Assembly: GCA_024704765.1 (NCBI GenBank)
Contig: JAKMXF010000110.1
Coordinates: 372,001-436,000 of the forward strand
Direction: 5' to 3'
Length of the DNA: 64,000 bases
DNA from: Oopsacas minuta
Taxonomy: Eukaryota > Animalia > Porifera
A program made the translations under genes and the position numbers. The notes below the pieces were generated by a model. It worked only from the letters and a program-made list of their open reading frames with translations, was not told the DNA's origin and ran no database searches. Below, one piece after another: positions 2,136-37,555 of this stretch (its first letter is position 1; every line of letters begins with the position of its first letter).

Positions 2136-2181
2136 CACAAGAATTATTTATTCCTAATATTTACTTACGAAAAGAACAAAG

Positions 2182-5162
2182 ATGGCTGCCTTAGAAATGC
2201 CTGTACGTGCTCTAACCCTATACAATAACGGGTATGGTGTATTTCAACGTGATGTTAAAGTGAAGGGACGTGGTCATATAGATCTGTACTTCCAAGCTAA
2301 AGACATGGAGTATGTATTGAAGAGTTTATCATTCACTGACGAGACTGGCTCCAGTTTGGGTAATATTTCTTATGAACCTAGTCGCCCAGAAGCTACATTC
2401 AGTGTAGATGAGTCTGAGAGTATTATCGGGTTAATGCGTTCTTTACAGGGATTTACTGTGTCTGTTAAGCTGACAACAGGCAATGAAGTGCAGGGGAGGT
2501 TGCTGGGAGTAGATACACTAGAGGTAAATGTTCGTCCGTGAAGTATGTAATTCATGGTTCATCTTATTATAAATACATTAGGAAAATTGTCATTAGTTCA
2601 CCATTTTATCAGTGAAATTCGACTAAACAATATATTTACAACTTGACAGACCTCCTTTAACACGCTTAATTAACATATATCGAAGTAGAGTTCTATTAAT
2701 TGAACAGTTTATATTATGATAACGTCATAAAATAATGAAATGCCCCCTGCCCGCATGCTCAGATGTACATCATGCGGAGCTGAAACAAGTTTGTCGTTAA
2801 CAATACCTTACTATCTTCATTAACCTACATATCTATCCTTTAGACACCAGTAGGTGATCGAATCCAATCAGTTAACCACATTTGTTTACTACTACCAGAT
2901 GGATCTCTCATAAAGCACAGCATTAACTCAATAGATAAGCTCCGTGTCCTAGATACCAGTGCTGTTAAGGATATAGAACATAGTCTGGACCTTATAATGA
3001 GCGCTGAGAAGACTAACATGCAAAAGCTATCTATATTCTATCACGGTGATGATCAGGATAAGATCCTGAGTGTGAGATACGGTGTTATAGTAAGTGAATG
3101 GCAAAGTTCTTATAGATTAGTTCTCAAGCCTGAAGCTACTGCTAGTGATACGATTCGTTTCCGTTTAGAAGGTTTTGCTGTAGTTAATAATGTTAAAGAT
3201 GATGATTGGAATGATATCAAGCTTACTCTGGTCGTAGGTGCTCCCATGTTACCTACAACTGGGGGGTCTAGTAGTGGAGGATCTGCTGGGGGAACATTGG
3301 AACTCACGATTAAACAGATTACCGGAGCTGATATATTCATTCGTGCTAATCCTAGAGATACTGTGGAGCATGTTATTAAGAAGGTAAGGGATATGAAGTA
3401 TTAAGAAAATTCTCAAATAATAATTTTGAAACTACTTCTTTATATGCAGGGTAACTTCCACAAACGGGGTGTTAGGGACGCCGAAACATGCTACCCGTTT
3501 CACCATTTCTGCTAGATTCCCCGTTTGTGGATGGTTCATTTGTATGGGACTAGGAATTCTCTTTATTTATTTTCCACTCTGTTTGCAAAAGCCCCGTTTG
3601 TGGAGGTTTCACTGCACTTAATTTATGCGAAATTCGCGAAAATTATACCTTTGATAAATCATGATTTCCTAAATCTTTACAGCCCAAAGTAAGCCAGGCC
3701 ATTACAATAATAATTTCTGTTTATTTCTTCAGTAACCTCAAATATTTTCAATTTAGATAGCAACTAAGAAAGGCATCTCTGAGAGTAGCTGTAAGCTAAT
3801 ATTCGCCGGTAAGCAGATAGAACCAGGGCGTACGCTAACAGACTACAATATTCAGAATAATGCTACAATCCACCTCGTGCTAAAAACAGGAGCTTCTCAG
3901 TCATCTAGCTCTACATCCGGTGGCGGATTTGTAATGGCAGCTCAGCACAACCTTTCTTACTATCCTATAGATCCAGCTGTTACAGCTAAAAGGAAGCAGA
4001 AAGCTATTGTACCTCTACTTAGTACAGAGCTACAGGGACACCAAGTATTGCTTTATGATGAGAATATTCGTAAGGGGAATCCATTGACTTCTATTCTATT
4101 TGAAAATGCTACAGGACGTACATTGGATGGTGGTAGTATTCAGGTAGATCTTATATTATTCTTATACTGTCAATTCCTATCATAGATATATATAACACGG
4201 ATGTTTCGAAATTTCACGGTCCTTGAGCGTCCATATAATGAAATTGGGTGAACTTGGTGCTACAAATTTTGGTTTTCCTATTCATTAAGCTCGTAACGCA
4301 TATGCCGTAATCTGTTAATATTTTTTAGGTAATGACAGAAGACCTATTTTTGGGAGAGGGTAGTTTCCTAACCCTCCATCCAGGAGATGAAAGCTCTCCA
4401 ATACCCTACTGCGTAGAGACAGGCTGTGAAGTAACAGTAGACTATGACATTAGTACCCTCAAATTCCACAGAGTAACAATCAAAAACGGTTTAGTAGAAT
4501 TTACACGTAAGAGAAGACAGAGGACTATATACCGTATAAATAACAAAACTGATAGATCACTAGATTTTATGCTAAATCACCCATTCCTGGATGGATGGGA
4601 ACTACTACAAAAAGACCCGAATAATCCTCAAAACGAAATCGAAGAACCTGTCGATATTACAGACAGATTGTATCAATTTAGATTCCCAGTTGGGCCTAGA
4701 GTTGAGAAGAAAGTTTTTAATGTTAGGGAATCCACAAATGACGTAATAGAGAATGATATAGATAGTCAGGTATGCAGAGATGATCTTGAAAACTGGACCA
4801 AGAAAGCTTACCTCGATCAACCTACTATACAGGCTCTAACTGAAGTTTTGGATCTTCAATCTGAGGTAAATGAGATAGCGAAAGCTATCGTAGAGAAGGA
4901 AGGAGATATCCGAGAACTGAACACTACACAATCTCGTCTACGTGATAATATAAAAGCTCTACAGGGACATGAAGGAGAATCTAAGAAGTATGTTAAACAG
5001 CTGGGAGCTACCGAGGATAGACTAACCCAAATACAGAGTAGTATTAAAGGATTCCGTCAGGATAAGAAGAAAATTCAGATAGAGAAAGATAGAAAAATTG
5101 ATCTTATTGAGTTCTCTAAGGATTTAAAAGTTCTAGAGGATGAGTCTGAGAGTACCGTCTAA
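2182..5162 (+). CDS. DUF4139-like (mucoidy-inhibitor-like) protein with internal ubiquitin-like domain; 4 exons, about 700 aa
   Basis: Exons 2182-2523, 2844-3383, 3757-4143 and 4329-5162 have GT-AG junctions, all phase 0, and total 2103 nt. The N-terminus [23 protein letters not shown] and later [24 protein letters not shown] and IVPLL...[24 protein letters not shown] resemble bacterial DUF4139-type proteins. UBL: [29 protein letters not shown]|[45 protein letters not shown]. The C-terminus is a coiled coil. Confidence 0.75.
3447..3614. mobile_element. MITE family C (TIR about CAGTAAACCTCCACAAACGGGG) in intron 2 of the DUF4139-UBL gene
   Basis: The left end CAGGGTAACTTCCACAAACGGGG and right end CCCCGTTTGTGGAGGTTTCACTG are inverted copies. 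Related ends occur at 31436-31559 and 63973-64000. Confidence 0.75.
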
Positions 5163-21024: not shown

Positions 21025-21075
21025 TACTTATATTTGTGTAGATATTCACTTAATATTTCAACTATATTTAGAAGA

Positions 21076-21801
21076 ATGGCTGATACTAGTCTAGATGATT
21101 TTATAAAACAGAAGCGAGTATCTTCTCGCACTATCAGGGGGTCCCGGAGAGGAGGAGGAGGACCTCGTGGAGGCCGTGGAGGTAGAGGGAGACGTCCGTA
21201 CAGTTCGGCTCGCTTCTCTTCCTCTACGACTCGTAGAGGAGCAGGAGCTGGTTTCAAAGCCTCTACCAGGACCCCGAGACGTTCGGGGAGTTTCAGTGGG
21301 AGAGGAGGTGCCACACCTCAGAGTCCAAATAATATCCAGCTTGGGGGACCAATGGGTACCTCCCTGATCGTCTCGAATCTAGAATTCGGAGTCAATGACG
21401 CTGATATACATGAGCTGTTTAGCGAATTTGGTCGCCTCCGTCGCTACGGCGTGCACTACAATGCTCAAGGTAATTCTATCGGTACTGCAGAGGTTGTGTT
21501 TACTAGATCCAGTGATGCTATGAAGGCTATACAAGCTTATCAGGACGTTCCTCTAGACGGAAGACCTATGCGACTACATGTTGCTATGAGCTCATTCCGC
21601 ATAACTCAAATGCCAGGGATGGATAGTCCTGCATCTAATATAAGGGGGGCTGGTATAGGTAGACGTGGAGCGAGGAGAGGACGAGGAGGCAGAGGATCAA
21701 GGGGTGGAGGTAGGAAGATGCCATCAGCTGTTGAACTGAATGATGAGTTAGATGTGTACCATAACAAAAGTAACAAGAGCGTGATTATGGATCAAAACTG
21801 A
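21076..21801 (+). CDS. ALYREF: Aly/REF export factor (THO complex subunit 4), intronless
   Basis: N-terminal REF motif MADTSLDDFIK, RGG-rich arms, RRM (LIVSNLEFGVNDADIHELFSEFG..VHYNAQGNSIGTAEVVF..A.KAIQAY.DVPLDGRPM), C-terminal motif PSAVELNDELDVY. Confidence 0.95.
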   Translation: MADTSLDDFIKQKRVSSRTIRGSRRGGGGPRGGRGGRGRRPYSSARFSSSTTRRGAGAGFKASTRTPRRSGSFSGRGGATPQSPNNIQLGGPMGTSLIVSNLEFGVNDADIHELFSEFGRLRRYGVHYNAQGNSIGTAEVVFTRSSDAMKAIQAYQDVPLDGRPMRLHVAMSSFRITQMPGMDSPASNIRGAGIGRRGARRGRGGRGSRGGGRKMPSAVELNDELDVYHNKSNKSVIMDQN

Positions 21802-25600: not shown

Positions 25601-28419
25601 ATCATAATGTGAAATAGAGAATCTAGGCGTATGAAAGGGATTGGAATGCATTTGTAGCCTTATGTCCCTGAACCTGGATGGAACCATGCACTAGCTGATT
25701 GTATTCTGGAGAGAATCGAATTGAGTGAGAGTTTTAACGGTAATAATGAATTATTAAGAGGATATGTAGGTGTGTTAGAAAGAAGGTATAACACATGCCA
25801 ACGTCTTTCAAGTTGTCTAGCTTGATGAAAGCACGGGTTTACTGACCTTCGCGTATTTGTTGTACACACAGTGACATAATACTTTGATATGAGATGTTTG
25901 TGACATTGAATGCTGAGTAATGTTATTGAATGGAATAGTTCATTTGATGTTATAGAAGAAATGTCAAACACATTACCAATTAGATCTGTTGTTTTTGTCT
26001 AGGCTAAGATTGTTGTATCCTACTGACAGCTGACATACTACGTATATTTAGTTTATAGCTTCATGTATAACTATACCTTATTGATTGAGAGGATACGACC
26101 TCCTTTCTGTGTTAACAACAATGGAAGTTGGAATGCAGCATTATCTTCTACTCCTATTTACTGGTCCTGTAATGGCCTTTTTAACAAATTTAGATATGGT
26201 TGAAATTTCCCAATACCTTGTTCTATACAATTTACAACTCAAACTAACAAGGTGTATAGATCACTGGATACTGTATTTTATAATACATTAAAATATTTAT
26301 ACAGATTTGCTGGTATTAATGTTTGTATAGATCCTTCAGATGATGATGATTATAATGAGTTCGATGAGATAGATGAAGAGGTTGCTATGAATGCTCTACT
26401 TGATAAAGACATAGATAGAGTTAGACAGAAGTATGGTAAAGATGCTCTGGAGACCAGGAATTACGGAGGGATTGGTGATATCGATATTGACTTGATTGTT
26501 GATATGAACTTCTTAGAACCTGAGATAGCTCGGGCTTGGGGAGTTAAGCATACAATACCTCTGACATTTCGTCTTAGTCTGAGCGCGGAACATTATCTAG
26601 ATGGTGCTGATATCAAGGTGGAAGTATTCCAGGAAGACAAGGGGAACACTAAAGGTAAGATTCTTAGAATTAATTTATTACGAATATTATTTACTAAAAT
26701 AAATAGACTTATATTTTGATGAAATTTGGTGATTTGTATTTAGCATAAATCACCATTTTTAACAAAACAAGACCTTAGACTTCATTTTCATTTTCTTATA
26801 ATTGTAGGAATATGCAAACAGCTTGAGAAGATAGTCAGTCAGTTCATCTCTACAAGCACTAAAGTAATCAAGAATCCTCTCTGTAATTCTAAGGTAGAAG
26901 AGGCAGTAGAAGCTTACAACACTTTGGAACAGAGACTGGCAGTAAAGAGAAAGGCTATCTCAAAGAGCGGAGGTCTTATCCCAGAGAAGAAAGGATTAAT
27001 CGCTCAATTCATGGATAAATTCACTAAAGACAAGCAAGTAGATTGTGATATGTTAATAGCTCAGCTGGTAGAGATGGGATGGGAGACAGAGCTAGCAGTA
27101 CATGCACTAGAGGAGTGTAATATGGATCTAGAGAAAGCACTAAACTATCTGTCTGAAGAGAAAATTATTGATGAGAGTGATTTGGTATGTTTGTATTGTA
27201 GTTAGTGTTTACATATACCTCAATGTATATCTAAATACCCCCTCTCTTATAGGAGAATCCTAAGACATTTGATAAACAGAAGTCCAGAGGAGCTGAGGTA
27301 TCAGGTCTAGATTGGATGTCTGATATTTCAGACACGAATGAAGCAGCTTTGAAATCTAAAATGTTCCCTCCTCTCTCTCACGGGTTCCTATGTCAAGTAA
27401 TACACTATATTCTCAATAGAGTACCAACTCTAAATGATTTCTGTGTTATCTGTGATGAAACTCATCTCTTCGCAAACGGTGCTATGTTAAAACCAACCGT
27501 ATGTGCTCGTGAATTGTGCTCCTTCGCCTTCCAGACGCTGGGTGTAATGGCTGATGTAGCAGACTCTATTGCTACAGGACCGGAAGTTGTTGAGTTACTG
27601 GTTGCTATGTGTAACGCCGCTAGCCTATCCAATAGACGAGAAGATATTTTAGACCCATACCCAACGGTTGTAGACCCTACCAATCCGAAACAATTCGCAT
27701 TACACCCGAAAGAGAAAAATTTCAAAAAAGTTGAGAAGGCTATGGGATTTGTATTACAAGAATTGAAGGCACTCCCTACTGTATTGAAAGATCGATTAGA
27801 TAGTTTAGATCAAAATTCATTTCCTCTGTTACAATGGGTTCTAGCTAGCAATAGATGTCATATAGTTAAGCTATCACCAGATAGACAAATAAAGTCTATG
27901 GGAACTACACACCAGTTTTTACTACTGTCAGCTCCGCCAGCTAAAGAAGCAGAATTCAGGAAACTTAAACTGAAAAACAAAAGTATTTACGCTTTCCATG
28001 GTTCTAGACTTGAAAACTGGCACTCTATTATGAGGAACGGATTGATGAACGCTTCTGGTACCAAATTTCAACTGAATGGTGCAGCTTACGGATCTGGGAT
28101 CTATCTTAGCCCTCATGCGTCCGTATCCTTTGGGTACTCAGGGATACACGGAGGACATGCATCAACAGCTGACAAGAAGAAGGGCAGACCGACTATGCTG
28201 TCATCACAAAATCTAAACTGTATCGCATTATGTGAAGTTATTGACTCTTCTAAAATAAAGAAATCTGGTAACATATGGGTATTGGGAGAAGCTGACCACG
28301 TAGTTACACGGTTCTTTTTCGTGTATGAAGATAATACAACAGGTGATACGAACTTTGATACAAGGGAAGACAAATATATTAAAGAGATTGAAAATGCTGT
28401 GAAGAGTTTGATAAGCTAA
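22627..28419 (+). CDS. PARP6/8: PARP6/PARP8-like mono-ADP-ribosyltransferase with long repetitive N-terminus and UBA-like insert; 5 exons, about 1395 aa
   Basis: Exons 22627-24729, 24981-25197, 26331-26654, 26808-27184 and 27253-28419 (4188 nt, phases 0/1/1/0). PARP6/8 N-domain DIDRVRQKYG..RNYGGIGDIDIDL..FLEPEIARAWGV..YLDG; Cys motif FCVICDETH..KPTVCARELCSF; catalytic FHGSRLENWHSIMRNGL..YGSGIYLSP..SFGYS..ALCEV..NIWV. Linkage of exons 1-2 to the PARP exons is inferred from splice phase. Confidence 0.85.
23830..24100 (+). repeat. Coding tandem repeats in PARP exon 1: (K)P(I/S)IPTDKQQ(Q)xEVMHTEV.E
   Basis: About 4 imperfect units: PIIPTDGEVMHVEVVEP / QYIPTDKQQGEVVME / PSVPTDKQQQHSEVMHTEVAE / PIIPTDKQQQSEVMHTEVVE. 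A second T-D..PVLA(T/K)D repeat family lies at about 22930-23320. Confidence 0.85.
24757..24922. mobile_element. MITE family A copy (reverse orientation) in PARP intron 1
   Basis: TA|CAGTTAACTCCGATTATATC..TTGTACAAAATTGGTCCAAACCGTC..ATCGCG..TTGAGCTTCGATATAACATGAGTTGTCTA|TA. Confidence 0.8.
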
Positions 28420-29910: not shown

Positions 29911-30483
29911 TCATATCTTATCTTTGTCAAGCAGCTGATTTAGTTCATTACAGATTAGTTGCAGATTGTCATTGTAGGGTTCACCCTTGTGAAACAATTT
30001 ATCTAAAACATCTGGATCGTAGAAGAACGAGAAGGCCTCACTTAGTTTCTTTCTAGACTTTTCCTTGATTTTCGTTTTGATGCATGTCATAAGGACTCCC
30101 TCTGCTTCTTGTGCCTCTTTAATTAGGTGATCTGGGCTGTAAGACCAATCTACCTGATGGAAGCTAAGCACTGTTAATGCAATGCGTTTGAATTTCCCAC
30201 GGAACTCCCTTATCTGTTCCATTTGTTTCTCACTGAACTCTTTGTTTAGGATCATAATCCCGATTTTGAAGGAACACTTTACGATCGATTTTATCCTTTT
30301 ATCAGCTTCCTTCGCTCCTATTTCACGCTCCATAACTCGTAATGCTTGATCAAGCAAGCGGTTATAATCGTCATCAAGTATCATCTTAGTTAGCGCCTTT
30401 GAATTCGCCATTTTACTAACAATTTTCTTCTCGCAAAGAGTTATAATCTTTCTAGAATTGCTCTCTGAACCGACTGCTGCCAT
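29911..30483 (-). CDS. TNFAIP8: TNFAIP8/TIPE family protein (DUF758), intronless
   Basis: NSRKIITLCEKKIVSKMA..MILDDDYNRLLDQ..KEADKRIKSIVKCSFKIGIM..EF..FRGKFKRIALTVLSFHQVDWSY..FSFFYDPDVLDKLF..L.LIC.ELNQLLD matches the TIPE family pattern. The first ATG is at 30483; the ORF track start at 30495 is TTG. Confidence 0.92.
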   Translation of the reverse strand: MAAVGSESNSRKIITLCEKKIVSKMANSKALTKMILDDDYNRLLDQALRVMEREIGAKEADKRIKSIVKCSFKIGIMILNKEFSEKQMEQIREFRGKFKRIALTVLSFHQVDWSYSPDHLIKEAQEAEGVLMTCIKTKIKEKSRKKLSEAFSFFYDPDVLDKLFHKGEPYNDNLQLICNELNQLLDKDKI

Positions 30484-30986
30484 TATTATTTTCAATATAC
30501 TGATATAGGTTATTGTGTATATAACAATAGCATTTCTAACTTCTATTTATTCGATTTAGAACTGCATAATGCCATTATACCATGCTTCTACAATTTCATC
30601 ATTACCTTATCAATTGTTCCGATCAGCAGTAGTGGTAATACGATACTTACTTATTCAAATGTATGTCGCCAGCTAAATTTATCGTTCATAGAAACCTTTA
30701 CTGTAACTTCTTAGAGATTAATTAATTTCCTCATTTAGAGGCAGATATTACTGCAATTTTTGTGAGTATATTCTCATAAATTTTTGCTCAAATAGGCATT
30801 CTATTTGCGCATATAAACATACGTACATACATTTATAGATATTTAATATTTTCATCTTCTAATTTTAAGTATTCTATATAGGAATTTACAGATAAATACT
30901 ATTTATTTCTGATACAATAGTTACTATAGAAATTTATAATTCAATACTTTTATGACGTCATGTTGTTGAATAGGCTATTTAGCTAA
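30484..30986. promoter_or_regulatory. Putative bidirectional promoter between head-to-head TNFAIP8 and KDM4
   Basis: About 500 bp separate the divergent start codons. No specific elements identified; inferred from gene geometry only. Confidence 0.4.
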
Positions 30987-33900
30987 ATGGAAAAGTGTGA
31001 ATGGGAGTTAGAAGATGGCGTTATGGTATTCAAACCAACTATGGACCAGTTCAGAGATTTCTCAAGTTTCATTTCGTGTATGGAAGCCGCGGGCGCGCAT
31101 GAAAAGGGCCTCGCGAAAGTTATTCCACCCAAAGAATGGTCGCCTAATACATGCAATTACTCGGAGATTGACTTCTCGATTCCATGTCCAATTCTCCAGC
31201 TGGTGAGTGGATCTCAAGGCGTTTATCAAATGTACAATATACAGAAGAAACCAACTAATTTCAAATCTTTCCGTAAACTCACACTATCTGACGAGTACAA
31301 GAGTCCTAAAACACAGGATATTGATGAGTTGGAGAGGAAATATTGGAAGAATGTTACTTTCAATCAAGTTATATACGGAGCTGATGTATCAGGTACTCTA
31401 TTTGATAGTGACGTCAATATTTGGAATATCAGGTATAGTAAAACTTCAATAAACAGGACCTGTAGAAACGGAGTGAAAAATGGATAGAGCGAATTTCTAA
31501 TCACATATAAATGAAAACATTTTGGCGTTCCTAACACACCGTTTGTGGAAGTTACAATGTATACTCATATCATAAATGTTAGGATATATACAGTGAAATT
31601 GTGAAAGTGGCCAGATGCGAAAACTCTGGATATTACGTACGATTTTCAGCCCCTTTCAATGAAGTTTTTAAGACATATCTAAAATTTCAAATCTGAATTT
31701 AATAATCCATCATCCAACATTTTTACTAAATTCATTGCGTTTCATAAATACATATTTTATAAGATTTATCCTCTTCTAGCAAGCTAGACAGTATCCTACA
31801 GGAAATACCACGGGAGACAGGTATCAAGATCCCTGGTGTATGTACTGCCTATCTGTATTTCGGCATGTGGAGATCTACATTTGGTTGGCACATAGAAGAC
31901 ATGGATCTATACAGTATAAACTATTTACACTACGGGGCTCCTAAAGTCTGGTATGGAATTCCTGCTACTGACGCTCATAAACTCGAACAACTTTCCCGCT
32001 CATTTTTCCCTGACCACTTCAGAGACTGTCCTGCCTTTCTACGTCATAAAATGACAGTCATCTCCCCCACTGTTTTGAAGAAATACTCTGTTCCTTTCTC
32101 ACGAGTTGTTCAGAGAGAAGGGCAGATAGTAATCTCGTTCCCTAGGGCTTACCATTCAGGATTCAACCTAGGATTGAATATAGCAGAAAGCACAAACTTT
32201 GCGACACAAGGATGGATCGATATAGGAAAGAAAGCTGTTGTATGTCACTGTGATCCTGATGGAGTACATATCGATATGGATTTGTTTATTAAGAAATACC
32301 AACCTGAACAGTATCAAGCTTATTTAGCTCAGAAGAAGAAATCGAATCAAGACAAGGGACGTGCTGGTAAGAACAAATCTACTAAATTAGCATCTACAAA
32401 TAGCGGCCTATTAGAAAAGGAGTTAGATACACTGACTGATAAAGATCAAAAGTTAGAAGCTAAAATGAATGACTGGTGCTCTAAATTCTCCGGTTTATGG
32501 AAGGGACAGTCTCCAGACAATTTCGTGTTTGAATCCGCATTTAACCTGGTCATGAGTCAGAAGGGAAGTAGATGTTCCATATGTGCGCTATTCGAGGACC
32601 CCTCTCCTTTCCAGGGATTCTCACGTGAGGAGCTACTCACGACCTACTGGGCGTTAAAGCGTAACAAAAAAGGCGGGTTAATGAATCCTGACACTATTTT
32701 AGAAAGTCTCAAGGCTCCCTCCTCGCCTGTTGATATGGATTGGAAACATATATCAAATCAGATAGTAACTAAAAAGAAAATTTTCCCTAAAAAACGTGGA
32801 GGCAAGAGAATAGATCGTTCGCCTCTCCCTCAACTTGATCCCCCTGAAATAAATAAGATAATCTCCCAGGAATTACGGAGTCCCCTCTCCCCGACCTGTA
32901 CAGAAGATCTACTTAATTCTACAAGAGCTACTTATGGATCAGATAGCCAAACTTCATCTTATCTATTCGATCAATTTTCTGAGTGTAAATCGAAATCTGA
33001 TACAGTAGTAGATAGCTGTATTGTGTTAGAGAATAGTGAGACTTTCTCTCTAGCAGAAGAGACTGTATTTGCCCTCAAGAGTGACTCAAGTAACGGTGCT
33101 ATTAACGGAGATAAGAAGCCCAGACTCTCTGAAACTTGCCCTAGCCCTGACTTGACTCAGTCCTATGACCTACCAAGGTCTACATACAGTTTTCATAACG
33201 CTCTTGCTATTCCTAGTAGAGAAAAGGTAAACTCAAAATCATCTCTCAAATGTCAATCAGATGACAGCTCTGATGAAGAAGACGAGGAGATAATACAATG
33301 TATCCACTGTAGAATAGCAGTACATCCTTCTTGCTATGGACTACGGATTGATGACGTCAGACCTAACTGGTTATGTAGTAGATGTCAGTTGAAATCATAT
33401 GTAGCTCAGTGTGAGCTCTGTCAGTTGAGAGGTGGACCTCTTAAGCCTACTTCTAATGGGAAATGGGCTCATGTGACGTGTGCAGTAGTTGTACCTGAAG
33501 TTTTATTCGGGGACCCAGACAAGCGAGAGCCAGTGAATATCAGTTGCATTCCGAAGTCCCGATGGCGTATTAAGTGTCTATACTGTAACACACACGGTGC
33601 TAAAGGAGGAGCTAGCCTACAGTGTGGATACAGGAAATGTTCATCATCTTTCCATGTAACATGTGCACAATATAACGGTATAGTACACTGGGCACCGGAT
33701 AATGATGGTAGTAAAGGTATACGTGCTAATTGTCCTCGACACGATAAGGATAAACAGGAGGAGGTTAGACGCGAGCAAAAGTTGATACCAATCGGTGATC
33801 CTGTTATCGCTAAAATTAACACTACAAAATACACTCAAGCTGAGGTGATTGAGAGAAATGAACAACCTTGCTTTGAGGTAGAATTCATAGAAGATGAATC

Positions 33901-34195
33901 AGTATGTTTTAACGTCCCCCCTAGTGATATACAATCAGATTCTACAAGTATTAATAAAATAGTCAAAGTTAAATGGAGTGATGGCTTGCTATATGATGGA
34001 ATTATTAAAGCTGAACATAAAGAATTGATCTATACAATCAAATTTGATAACGGTTCTGTAAATACTTTCCCTCGAGATGAGATATACACACTGCAAGATA
34101 AATTACCGAAAAAGGTTCAATCTAAATTGTGTAAGGTACAAGAGAGTGCAAAGTTCGAAGAAACTACTAATTTAATGGAAAGTTCAATTCAGTAG
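30987..34195 (+). CDS. KDM4: Lysine-specific demethylase 4 (KDM4/JMJD2): JmjN-JmjC-PHD-ePHD-double Tudor; 2 exons, about 953 aa
   Basis: Exons 30987-31432 and 31780-34195. JmjN VMVFKPTMDQFRDF..GLAKVIPPKEW; JmjC IPGVCTAYLYFGMWRSTFGWHIEDMDLYSINYLHYGAPKVWY..FLRHK..AYHSGFNLG.NIAESTNFA with H-x-E..H iron ligands; PHD C..C..AVHPSCYG..CSRC; WAHVTCA..ePHD; tandem Tudor. Confidence 0.95.
31436..31559. mobile_element. MITE family C copy at the 5' end of the single KDM4 intron
   Basis: Right end GGCGTTCCTAACACACCGTTTGTGGAAGTTACAATG|TA is the reverse complement of the 3447 copy's left end. The left end TAGTAAAACTTCAATAAACAGG is degenerate. Confidence 0.65.
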
Positions 34196-34909: not shown

Positions 34910-37555
34910 ATGCTCTATCGCTGCATTGAGCAAATTAGACGTGGAAACTCTCAAACAGTTTTCCTATGTTTTATGATCCTATTCTTCCTCAACAAGTTGC
35001 TCTTTTCTAACACACCACCAGTTACACACATTGATACACCCTCCTGTATTGATCCTAACACATGTATACAAGAGTACACATCTTATCTCTACACAATCAT
35101 AAGTTACTTCTCATTGAATGCCATATCATGGCATAGATTATTGTATTGGGGTGTTACGCTATGTATCTGGTATGTATTTGGTCGGAAATTTTTCTACACA
35201 TCTGAAGCGATGGTATCATTCATCACACAAATATCATTATTAATGTTCCTTGATTTATTTTTTTTATTCTTCCTGACTTGTTTTATGTTCGCGTTTGTGT
35301 GTATGAGTATTTATTGTTCTGTTTACACAATCGCGAGTTTTTTCAAAACAGCTCCGAGAGAGATTAAACGGAATTGGGGAAATTTCCCGAAACACACCAA
35401 GCGGATCGCGGATAAGATAACAGGACATAATATTGATTTATACAAATGTGTGTTGGACGTTAGTAATGTAGTTGTAGGAGAGAGCAGTTGTCTGTCAATT
35501 AATCTGATTAACGGAAAGAGAGAATCTTATAAATTCAAGAAAGATGATGTATTCATGACTGAAGTTACCTGGACTAGTAATAACCAAATAATCCCTGTAG
35601 TTATTGAACCAACTGACCTAACCGATACAACAAGTATACGTGTTAGTTTCACGTGTTATACAGCAGGAGAATATTCTATAAAAGCTACTATTAATTCAAG
35701 AGATTTTCCTAAGACACCAATTTTCCATTGTGCTGTAGCAGATAAGCCAGATCCAGGGCATTCACTTGTTGATTTAAAATCAGATTGTCTAGTTGTAGGA
35801 GAGCATGAGCAATCAAGTATAACTGTATTACCCCGTGATCAATATGATAATGAAGCTGCAATGCTTCCTGAGAAATTAAAACTCATATTCTTGGACACGG
35901 AGGAGCCAGCATTCTCTAGCTCAGTGGAGCGAGATCTGACAATCTATTTAACTGTTCTTCAGTGTGGAGTATTCAGATGTTGTATACAATATGATGGTGT
36001 AGTGGTGGGTAGCGGGGAATTCTTTGTAATTGTACTAACTATTATGAATCTTAGTAGACTTGAAAATGATATTCAAAACGATAATCCTCTTTCTATAACT
36101 GTTTCAATCTCAAACTTAGAAAGCAAGCAAACAAAGAAGAAAATTCAATGTCAAGTTACTCCCAAACAGCTAACTTTTACTGAGTATTTTCTCATATTTT
36201 TCCCTTCAAGATTTGCTACATTTAGAATGAGGCCGGCTACTAAAATAATGATAGACAACAATTCAAATTCAGTTTGTATTAACGATGGGAAACAAGATCA
36301 AATGAATGTACTATTTAGCTTGGAAGAAAATCGTCAACTTTTCATTGCATATTTTAATAAATTCCTTTTGAAGAATTTAGGAGGTTCTTCTGATTTTGAA
36401 GAAAAAAAGACACATTTTTACCAGAAACTTAAAGTCGCTGTTAGCAAAAATCGACACGGAACTCATTATATTACAATTGACCGTGAAAATTTGCTTAAAA
36501 ATATGATTAACCATTCAAAAGATTTTAGTCCATCACAATGGCATAAGAAATGGTATGTAGAATTTAAAGGGGAAGAAGGTATGGACTACGGGGGCGTTAG
36601 TAGGGAGTTGTTTGGCGTTTTGAGTCGACACATTTTCACACCAACAAATGATAACCAGTTTTTTGTATATTTTGAAGGGAACGCTAATCCCTTGTCACAT
36701 CCCAACCCAGCAATAGACCTCAAACAATCTGAACAGGTTTATATACTTATCGGACGTTTAATAGGAAAATGTTTGATAGAAAGCGCGTGCGGGAATCCTA
36801 TTTTCCTAGAAGCGAGACTCACTCGCTCGTTCTTAGCTCAGCTGCTGGGATTGAGAGTCTGTGCGACATATTTCGCGACGGATGATAAAGCTTTATATAG
36901 AGGTAAAATTCAATACATGAATGAGTCAAATAATGTTGAAGAATTAGAACAATATTTCGTAGAAGAAGAATTAGGGAAGGACGGATCCGTTCTTAAGACA
37001 GTACCTTTAAAACCTGGAGGTGCTGACATACTTGTAACACAAACAAACAAACTACAGTATTTAGATTTATTAGCTAACTATAGACTATGTAAGCGTGTTA
37101 GTAAGCAAATTGAGTTGGTATGTCGTGGATTATACGAATTAATACCTGATACATTACTCAGTGTATTTGATGAGAGCGAGTTTGAGCTGTTAATATGTGG
37201 AATAACTACGTATGATATTAAAGAATGGAAGGATAGCATTAACATTTGTACTACAGATAGACAAGTATTTCCTAATCTCTTGTCTTGGTTTTGGACTTTA
37301 GCAGAGAGCTTACCACAGGCTGGGAGAGCTAGAATTGTACAGTTTACAACCGGAAGTGGTCAACTTCCACCTGGAGGGTTCGATTCACTATCTCCCAGAT
37401 TTCAAATAGGTTTAAGTCCATCTAGTCACAAACTCCCAACAGCACATACTTGTTTCAATCAATTACTCCTACCTAATCACTCTACATACGAGGAGTTTAG
37501 ATGTATGTTTAATTTAGCTATGAAAGAGGGGGCTGAAGGATTTGGAATGGTTTAA
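34910..37555 (+). CDS. AREL1: Apoptosis-resistant E3 ubiquitin ligase 1-like (TM segments, filamin/Ig repeat, HECT), intronless
   Basis: N-terminal hydrophobic segments; filamin-like SFTCYTAGEYSIKATIN..PDPGHS..PRDQYDN; TPKQLTFTEYFLIFFPSRFATFRMRPATK; HECT VEFKGEEGMDYGGVSRELF..WFW..IVQFTTGS.QLPPGGF..LPTAHTCFNQLLLP with catalytic Cys. Confidence 0.9.
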   Translation: MLYRCIEQIRRGNSQTVFLCFMILFFLNKLLFSNTPPVTHIDTPSCIDPNTCIQEYTSYLYTIISYFSLNAISWHRLLYWGVTLCIWYVFGRKFFYTSEAMVSFITQISLLMFLDLFFLFFLTCFMFAFVCMSIYCSVYTIASFFKTAPREIKRNWGNFPKHTKRIADKITGHNIDLYKCVLDVSNVVVGESSCLSINLINGKRESYKFKKDDVFMTEVTWTSNNQIIPVVIEPTDLTDTTSIRVSFTCYTAGEYSIKATINSRDFPKTPIFHCAVADKPDPGHSLVDLKSDCLVVGEHEQSSITVLPRDQYDNEAAMLPEKLKLIFLDTEEPAFSSSVERDLTIYLTVLQCGVFRCCIQYDGVVVGSGEFFVIVLTIMNLSRLENDIQNDNPLSITVSISNLESKQTKKKIQCQVTPKQLTFTEYFLIFFPSRFATFRMRPATKIMIDNNSNSVCINDGKQDQMNVLFSLEENRQLFIAYFNKFLLKNLGGSSDFEEKKTHFYQKLKVAVSKNRHGTHYITIDRENLLKNMINHSKDFSPSQWHKKWYVEFKGEEGMDYGGVSRELFGVLSRHIFTPTNDNQFFVYFEGNANPLSHPNPAIDLKQSEQVYILIGRLIGKCLIESACGNPIFLEARLTRSFLAQLLGLRVCATYFATDDKALYRGKIQYMNESNNVEELEQYFVEEELGKDGSVLKTVPLKPGGADILVTQTNKLQYLDLLANYRLCKRVSKQIELVCRGLYELIPDTLLSVFDESEFELLICGITTYDIKEWKDSINICTTDRQVFPNLLSWFWTLAESLPQAGRARIVQFTTGSGQLPPGGFDSLSPRFQIGLSPSSHKLPTAHTCFNQLLLPNHSTYEEFRCMFNLAMKEGAEGFGMV

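Follow-up and report, generated by a model that had tools for sequence, protein, structure and literature searches.

A ubiquitin-like domain in a loop of a DUF4139-type scaffold protein of the sponge Oopsacas minuta

A four-exon gene and its transcript

The window analysed here is a 64,000-nucleotide stretch of the genome of the hexactinellid sponge Oopsacas minuta (GenBank assembly GCA_024704765.1, contig JAKMXF010000110.1, positions 372,001 to 436,000 of the forward strand). Near its start lies LOD99_15700, a gene whose product carries a ubiquitin-like (UBL) domain within a scaffold of the DUF4139 superfamily. Read from the sequence, the gene occupies the + strand and consists of four exons, 2182-2523, 2844-3383, 3757-4143 and 4329-5162 (stop codon included); translation starts at an ATG at 2182, and all three introns are bounded by GT..AG and lie in phase 0. 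The exons encode 114+180+129+277 = 700 amino acids. A first-pass annotation of the window had predicted that four exons join separate open reading frames (ORFs) into one protein of about 700 amino acids. This prediction was borne out: the database protein P0184, which is NCBI LOD99_15700 ('hypothetical protein', Oopsacas minuta, 700 amino acids), contains the translations of exons 1 to 4, exactly and consecutively, as residues 1-114, 115-294, 295-423 and 424-700. The gene is present as a single copy in the assembly (61.46 Mb in 365 contigs; the published genome has 365 scaffolds and 36% G+C, PMC10280926). In all searches, the gene was queried exon by exon or through database proteins by identifier, with P0184 representing the joined protein. 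Its features, all on the + strand, are as follows.

2173..2174: probable 3' splice site (AG) at which a 5' leader would be joined, 7 nt ahead of the ATG, suggested by loose contig ends in sequencing run X4 (see below)
2182..2523: exon 1, residues 1-114; beta domain at the N-terminus and the beginning of an Sm/Hfq-like barrel
2844..3383: exon 2, residues 115-294; remainder of the N-terminal region, first DUF4139-like part, Gly/Ser linker and the first 29 residues of the UBL
3018-3245: first part of the DUF4139-like domain, residues 173-248, within exon 2
3246..3296: N-side flexible linker, residues 249-265, Gly/Ser-rich and poorly conserved; its equivalent has low confidence in the orthologue model
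3297..3383: first part of the UBL, residues 266-294, equal to ubiquitin positions 1-29
3757..4143: exon 3, residues 295-423; second part of the UBL, linker, and the DUF4139-like beta core resumed
3757..3891: second part of the UBL, residues 295-339, equal to ubiquitin positions 30-74; ends LVLKTG, without Gly-Gly; matches PF00240
3892..3927: C-side flexible linker, residues 340-351, Ser/Gly-rich
4329..5162: exon 4, residues 424-700 and stop; remainder of the beta core, which includes the motifs of highest conservation, followed by the helical hairpin
4818..5105: C-terminal antiparallel helical hairpin, residues 587-633 and 638-682, then a short strand back to the core; mapped from the AlphaFold2 model of the orthologue P0011

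No sequencing run is on record as RNA; four runs come from the assembly's own study, and one of them, X4, is of an unlabelled kind. We found that X4 behaves like RNA-seq and bridges the junctions 3383|3757 and 4143|4329: the four exons are covered at depths of 10,000-60,000 and the introns at 260-2,200; one contig reaches 3383 and goes on with the first 17 letters of exon 3; and ahead of the contigs that begin at 3755 and 4327 stand the final letters of exons 2 and 3, respectively. The 3383/3757 junction is the one that the first-pass annotation had proposed to verify at the RNA level. A Trinity transcript protein from Vazella pourtalesii (P0175, 700 amino acids, 83% identical) runs without a gap over all three junctions and has the same layout. 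Elsewhere, one uninterrupted ORF in another genome (L016 4750-5805) spans the N half, the LVVG.P motif and the whole UBL, and dozens of full-length orthologues of ~690 amino acids are intronless.

Together, the bridged junctions, the Vazella transcript, the single ORF and the intronless orthologues place the UBL in the same protein as its flanks. It could be argued that the four-exon model is an annotation artefact in which a ubiquitin-like gene was fused with DUF4139-like fragments, given that the long ORFs are separate in the window and that the RNA-like run carries no RNA label; each of the four observations just listed speaks against such a fusion, which we regard as scarcely credible. The related idea that the UBL exon is a separate gene, which the earlier annotation had allowed for, is contradicted by the bridged junctions and by the 700-residue Vazella protein. 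We conclude that LOD99_15700 is a real, expressed four-exon gene, annotated only as hypothetical and unstudied.

Several further features were seen in and around the gene. The RNA-like contigs of X4 carry a 21-nt 5' extension that has no counterpart in the window ahead of 2173; the genome contains it exactly once, on a different contig (G000:C348:25626-25646; L024 1501-1521), where it is followed by AG|GTAAGT. This extension looks like a spliced leader that is trans-spliced 7 nt before the ATG, and the glass sponge Aphrocallistes vastus is reported to have a trans-spliced leader (PMC10282587). Within introns 1 and 2, at 2635-2741 and 3491-3597, the depth of the DNA-like runs rises from ~90-260 to 630-2,400 and many contigs end; both segments are probably short interspersed repeats resembling miniature inverted-repeat transposable elements (MITE-like). 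Directly upstream of the gene start, at 2054-2140, lies a short tandem repeat of ~21 bp, which reads MNLPINR four times in one frame.

The scaffold and the domain in its loop

The Pfam profile DUF4139 (PF13598) matches exon 2 with 20.2 bits (E 5e-4, profile positions 1-56), just ahead of the UBL, and this weak match recurs at the same position in independent homologues. P0184 has no precomputed PF13598 assignment; some orthologues do pass the threshold (P0012, 34.3 bits), many of them in the precomputed list. Similarly, NCBIfam TIGR02231 (the MuiA family) matches exon 2 with 23.3 bits (E 2e-5) and full-length relatives with 15-54 bits, and neither exon 2 nor the relatives reach its cut-off of 112.6 bits. 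A profile of the C-terminal half was run against 1.84 billion cluster representatives. It retrieved 2572 at E<=1e-3, and 93 when the limit was E<=1e-30; the majority have 650-720 amino acids and match over their last 300 residues. The four exons in the window are collinear with full-length members, among them a Planctomycetota protein matched with E values of 6e-17, 1e-17, 3e-15 and 4e-29. When the 78-sequence family profile was aligned by hhalign with a DUF4139 protein of the same genome (Pfam E 1e-48), the match reached 95.4% probability (E 1.8e-8) over 272 columns on both sides of the UBL insert. In the ESM Atlas, the model of a bacterial homologue reached template modelling (TM) scores of 0.69-0.76 to bacterial clusters labelled DUF4139, and the Atlas's own P0184 model reached ~0.5. 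These data place the scaffold in a branch of its own within the DUF4139 superfamily, mainly prokaryotic and outside the curated families, with a remote but reliable kinship to them.

The first-pass annotation had likened the two halves of the protein to both DUF4139 and DUF4140. Its recognition of a DUF4139-type scaffold with mostly prokaryotic relatives held. The DUF4140 part did not: PF13600 gave no match at E<=1 in the N-terminal 185 residues of 28 family members, and hhalign to the DUF4140-bearing N-terminus of a paralogue returned a probability of 0.8%. At least eight other O. minuta loci have strong canonical DUF4139 matches (G000:C310:463213-464253 and 418261-419265, and loci on contigs C320, C354 and C304); two canonical loci are intronless ORFs of ~620-637 amino acids with DUF4140 and DUF4139. 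A comparison of the family profile with solved structures by sequence yielded coiled-coil noise and no relative, and the PADLOC defence models gave weak coiled-coil matches only.

The fold was approached through AlphaFold2 models of the orthologue P0011 (mean predicted local distance difference test, pLDDT, 90.6) and of a Planctomycetota homologue, P0026 (pLDDT 88.9). Both models contain a large beta core and an antiparallel helical hairpin, and in both the last strand comes back to the core. The predicted layout accordingly begins with a beta domain that includes an Sm-like barrel, continues with the DUF4139-type beta core and closes with the helical hairpin at the C-terminus; the long C-terminal coiled coil foreseen in the first reading corresponds to this hairpin in the orthologue model. 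Scaffold positions that hardly vary are mostly occupied by Gly, Trp, Tyr and Pro, and an R-x-R-x-N motif in the first hairpin helix, just ahead of the turn, is also nearly invariant; nothing in these residues suggests catalysis. Foldseek results with the orthologue model were dominated by ubiquitin. Ribophorin I (OST1) offers only a weak lead: TM was ~0.1, with its chains outside the 50 best VIA matches, and neither a sequence match nor a membrane segment was found. A homodimer prediction with two copies of P0184 residues 361-700 gave a score of 0.15 and a mark of 0.32, without a verdict.

The 700-residue protein itself has neither a signal peptide nor a membrane segment. Across the family, a signal-like N-terminus or membrane segment was found in none of 15 proteins of the UBL-bearing clade, and 27 of 69 homologues without the UBL have a signal-like N-terminus. 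Because signal-like N-termini are absent from those 15 proteins, the eukaryotic, UBL-bearing form would fit a cytosolic location.

Pfam ubiquitin (PF00240) matches exon 3 with 47.8 bits (cut-off 25.4; E 1.2e-12) and the full UBL of the Vazella orthologue with 55.5 bits (E 5e-15); a weak match to the Rad23 UBL is also present. The O. minuta domain shares 31 of 76 positions (~41%) with a ubiquitin repeat, and the UBL of the orthologue model superposes on ubiquitin with a root-mean-square deviation of 0.7-1.0 Å at ~40% identity. In P0011 the domain is a 74-residue ubiquitin fold, confidently modelled between low-pLDDT linkers. The initial description, a full ubiquitin fold that follows LVVGAP between Gly/Ser spacers, agrees with these results: all the strings it quoted occur in the exon translations, and the PF00240 match is above threshold.

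In the alignment, members without the UBL have a variable low-complexity stretch between an LVxGxP motif and the next conserved strand; in the bacterial model P0026 the same loop (residues 269-322) is disordered, and some bacterial members, such as the Blastocatellia protein P0043, carry a CarboxypepD_reg domain at the same point. The UBL has thus replaced a disordered, variable surface loop of the core in one eukaryotic group. Since bacterial members hold CarboxypepD_reg there, we take the loop to be a permissive display site. A homologue with 49% identity, present on 16 intronless contigs (L011 3800-3830; L012-L014; Joint Genome Institute (JGI) sample 3300047102), has a one-base frame shift in the linker between LVVGAP and the UBL, which yields two overlapping ORFs of 341 and 395 amino acids; the shift may be an assembly error, the mark of a pseudogene or real.

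Among 100 orthologues, Lys48 is invariant (100/100), Gly47 and Leu43 are each kept in 99 and Phe45 in 94; position 44 is Val, Met or Ile in 97, Leu8 is hydrophobic in 93, and His68 is kept in 84. Lys6, Lys27 and Lys29 are each present in 94, Lys63 is replaced by Asn in 89, and no more than 10-14 have Gly at positions 75/76. In its degree of conservation the UBL equals the scaffold, with values such as 49-57% for the comparison with homoscleromorph sponges and 38% for that with Naegleria; the linkers are poorly conserved. From these comparisons of sequence, we conclude that the UBL is an integral domain under purifying selection in which the Leu8/Ile44/His68 recognition surface and Lys48 are retained. 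As the first-pass annotation had proposed from the LVLKTG ending, the UBL can be neither released nor conjugated, because it is internal and lacks Gly-Gly: a conjugatable modifier has an exposed or processable C-terminal Gly-Gly, and here LVLKTG is followed by a Ser-rich linker. It also differs from the UBL-UBA shuttles Rad23, Dsk2 and Ddi1, in which the UBL is N-terminal and accompanied by one or more UBA domains; the present UBL is internal, and no exon or orthologue matched UBA or UIM.

Distribution and origin

Members that bear the UBL were found in three sponge classes, Hexactinellida (O. minuta, Vazella pourtalesii), Homoscleromorpha (Oscarella lobularis, Corticium candelabrum) and Calcarea (Sycon ciliatum), and in Heterolobosea (Naegleria lovaniensis, N. 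fowleri). A word search for Naegleria, swamped by words from ubiquitin, contributed only N. fowleri and one transcriptome protein. At 90% identity, ~95 clusters have the UBL architecture, mostly on contigs of eukaryotic assemblies. In the searches made, the UBL-bearing family is apparently absent from named bilaterian and cnidarian proteins, and no prokaryotic match of tellable origin has the UBL. Two leads, and only leads, come from the ESM Atlas: a eukaryotic cluster of 134 members, among whose labelled phyla the rotifers are the most frequent, and an Asgard-rich cluster without the UBL. As to the possibility raised at the outset that orthologues of the same architecture are widespread and already characterised, orthologues of the same layout exist in sponges and Naegleria, and the literature is silent on them.

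Trees were built from the C-terminal region with the UBL left out, and are unrooted. UBL-bearing proteins fall on one side of a single branch, with Shimodaira-Hasegawa-like approximate likelihood ratio test (SH-aLRT) support of 98 and 99, which is consistent with a single insertion event, as judged from sequence. Because the tree is unrooted and the Promethearchaeota (Asgard) sequences sit on a very long branch, it does not decide between a bacterial and an archaeal ancestry; for the later history of the UBL form, it is compatible with vertical descent with losses and with transfer between eukaryotes alike. Two side observations concern unusual members. Promethearchaeota proteins P0094 and P0173 (1210-1306 amino acids), from metagenome-assembled genomes, contain three tandem partial copies of the C-terminal core and no UBL. 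P0023 (L017 61-2517) is an 818-residue UBL-bearing member on a JGI metagenome contig of 57-68% G+C with closely spaced same-strand genes, one of them for a 1350-residue sulfatase-domain protein; it may come from a prokaryote or from a eukaryote.

Neighbouring long ORFs of the window match the following proteins.

6-1475: MYCBPAP
21034-21801: RRM/FoP protein
27316-28419: PARP16/ARTD15-like PARP
29911-30495, - strand: TNFAIP8-like
30987-34195: KDM4-like JmjN/JmjC/PHD/Tudor demethylase
34910-37555: HECT ubiquitin ligase

LOD99_15700 therefore lies in an ordinary metazoan gene neighbourhood. This bears on the suggestion that the gene was acquired horizontally. Sponges live with dense bacterial communities, and the relatives of the scaffold are mostly prokaryotic, as would be expected if a bacterial gene had recently entered a sponge, or contaminated the assembly, and had later been 'domesticated' with introns. 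However, the gene has three spliceosomal introns and shares its contig with metazoan genes (MYCBPAP, KDM4-like, HECT); orthologues with the same UBL from Vazella, Oscarella, Corticium, Sycon and Naegleria form one group with it; and the UBL is missing from every prokaryotic match of tellable origin. The introns, the metazoan neighbours and the sponge-wide orthology exclude a recent transfer into O. minuta, and we consider the bacterial-transfer or contamination scenario highly improbable. The earlier suggestion of horizontal acquisition is thus not supported for a recent or lineage-specific event.

A second suggestion, that a neighbouring PARP with a UBA-like insert is linked to the gene, was not upheld: the PARP gene lies 22 kb downstream of LOD99_15700 with other genes between, and no UBA was found in it at E<=0.5. 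Judged on sequence, nothing supports a joint system of LOD99_15700 and PARP. Of the first-pass claim of an undescribed system, then, the joint system falls away; the gene is indeed unstudied, although annotated as hypothetical.

Proposed role and relation to known systems

Integral UBLs, such as those of Rad23, Dsk2, parkin and USP14, generally dock to ubiquitin receptors. By analogy, the tethered UBL would act as a docking handle that brings the scaffold to ubiquitin receptors, and whatever the conserved core or hairpin binds would come along. Candidate receptors would be Rpn1, Rpn10 and Rpn13 of the proteasome, UBA/UIM proteins and p97 adaptors; the possible tie to the proteasome, p97 or UBA-domain partners put forward in the first-pass annotation is thus a reasonable proposal. 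Our best guess for the role of LOD99_15700 is therefore a putative cytosolic scaffold docked to ubiquitin receptors by its tethered UBL. Taken as a whole, the reading of LOD99_15700 as a DUF4139-branch scaffold with a UBL in its loop, one that may dock to receptors, seems to us probable; the docking step taken alone is a tentative proposal, more doubtful than not.

Several points weigh against this reading. Conservation of the Ile44 surface and of Lys48 may partly reflect the origin of the fold and not receptor binding. The structures are predictions for an orthologue (46-48% identical) and a bacterial homologue, not for the protein in the window, which also falls below the gathering threshold of Pfam DUF4139 (20.2 against 31.8 bits). 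Run X4 has no RNA label, and it stems from the study that produced the assembly. Three bacterial loci of the family share no conserved gene neighbourhood, no partner has been identified, and the literature is silent on any family member, mentions of DUF4139 being incidental.

The conserved surface could also be read in other ways. An embedded UBL might serve as a non-removable ubiquitin that accepts chains, as in ubiquitin-fusion-degradation substrates, and so set the protein's own turnover. The invariance of Lys48, the retention of Lys6, Lys27 and Lys29 in 94 of the 100 orthologues, a UBL that is not cleavable and a flexible tether are all in keeping with such a degron; yet Lys63 has become Asn in 89 of the 100, the conserved lysines may simply be inherited from ubiquitin, and a degron alone would not need a conserved Ile44 surface. 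On balance, this turnover role appears unlikely. Slightly less likely still is that the UBL serves as a beta-grasp module with no part in the ubiquitin system; it might, for instance, regulate the scaffold intramolecularly or bind partners as RA/RBD and kinase UBL domains do. Many integral UBLs do serve as regulators or partner-binding domains, and the loop, which displays the unrelated CarboxypepD_reg in bacteria, would tolerate such a guest. Against this, the domain retains ~41% identity to ubiquitin with its recognition patch kept over 100 orthologues, and the long disordered linkers suggest a free domain, not a packed one. We thus continue to favour docking to ubiquitin receptors as the working hypothesis.

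A broader scenario, which we offer as speculative and on present evidence improbable, is that a DUF4139-like scaffold of prokaryotic type became part of the ubiquitin system in a single event early in eukaryote history, when it captured a ubiquitin copy in a permissive surface loop. It would represent an undescribed class of receptor-docking adaptor, kept in sponges, heteroloboseans and possibly rotifers and lost from most animals, with a scaffold that is maybe Asgard-derived and ribophorin I-like. The family offers a clean, datable case of eukaryotes attaching an old prokaryotic scaffold to the ubiquitin system, with the ubiquitin copy seated in a disordered loop that bacteria use for other guest domains. 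The discovery of partners could expose a proteasome- or UBA-linked pathway lost from most model animals, and would give a first functional handle on the large DUF4139 superfamily. What is new is a variant, both among UBL-domain proteins and within the DUF4139 superfamily; the gene itself was already annotated, if unstudied. We judge its relevance to ubiquitin-system evolution and sponge biology to be moderate.

Compared with known systems, the protein combines features of three groups. It shares a homologous beta-rich core with the uncharacterised DUF4139/MuiA proteins of bacteria, archaea and eukaryotes. Unlike these, it falls under both curated cut-offs and has no detectable DUF4140, and its branch has conserved motifs of its own, a C-terminal helical hairpin and, in eukaryotic members, a UBL in the variable loop; even to the canonical DUF4139 paralogues in its own genome it is only a distant relative. 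With the CarboxypepD_reg-bearing bacterial members (P0043) it has in common both the scaffold and the insertion point, between LVxGxP and the next conserved strand. The bacterial guest has the form of an Ig-like beta-sandwich, as is typical of exported proteins, and signal peptides occur in many of its hosts, whereas the eukaryotic guest is ubiquitin-like and its host lacks a signal peptide. Finally, like the integral (type-2) UBL proteins Rad23/Dsk2, parkin, USP14 and BAG1, it carries a non-conjugatable UBL on flexible tethers with the Ile44 patch kept. In contrast to those proteins, no UBA, UIM, RING or protease domain was found in it, its UBL sits within a loop of another domain, and the scaffold that carries this UBL is of a prokaryotic type.

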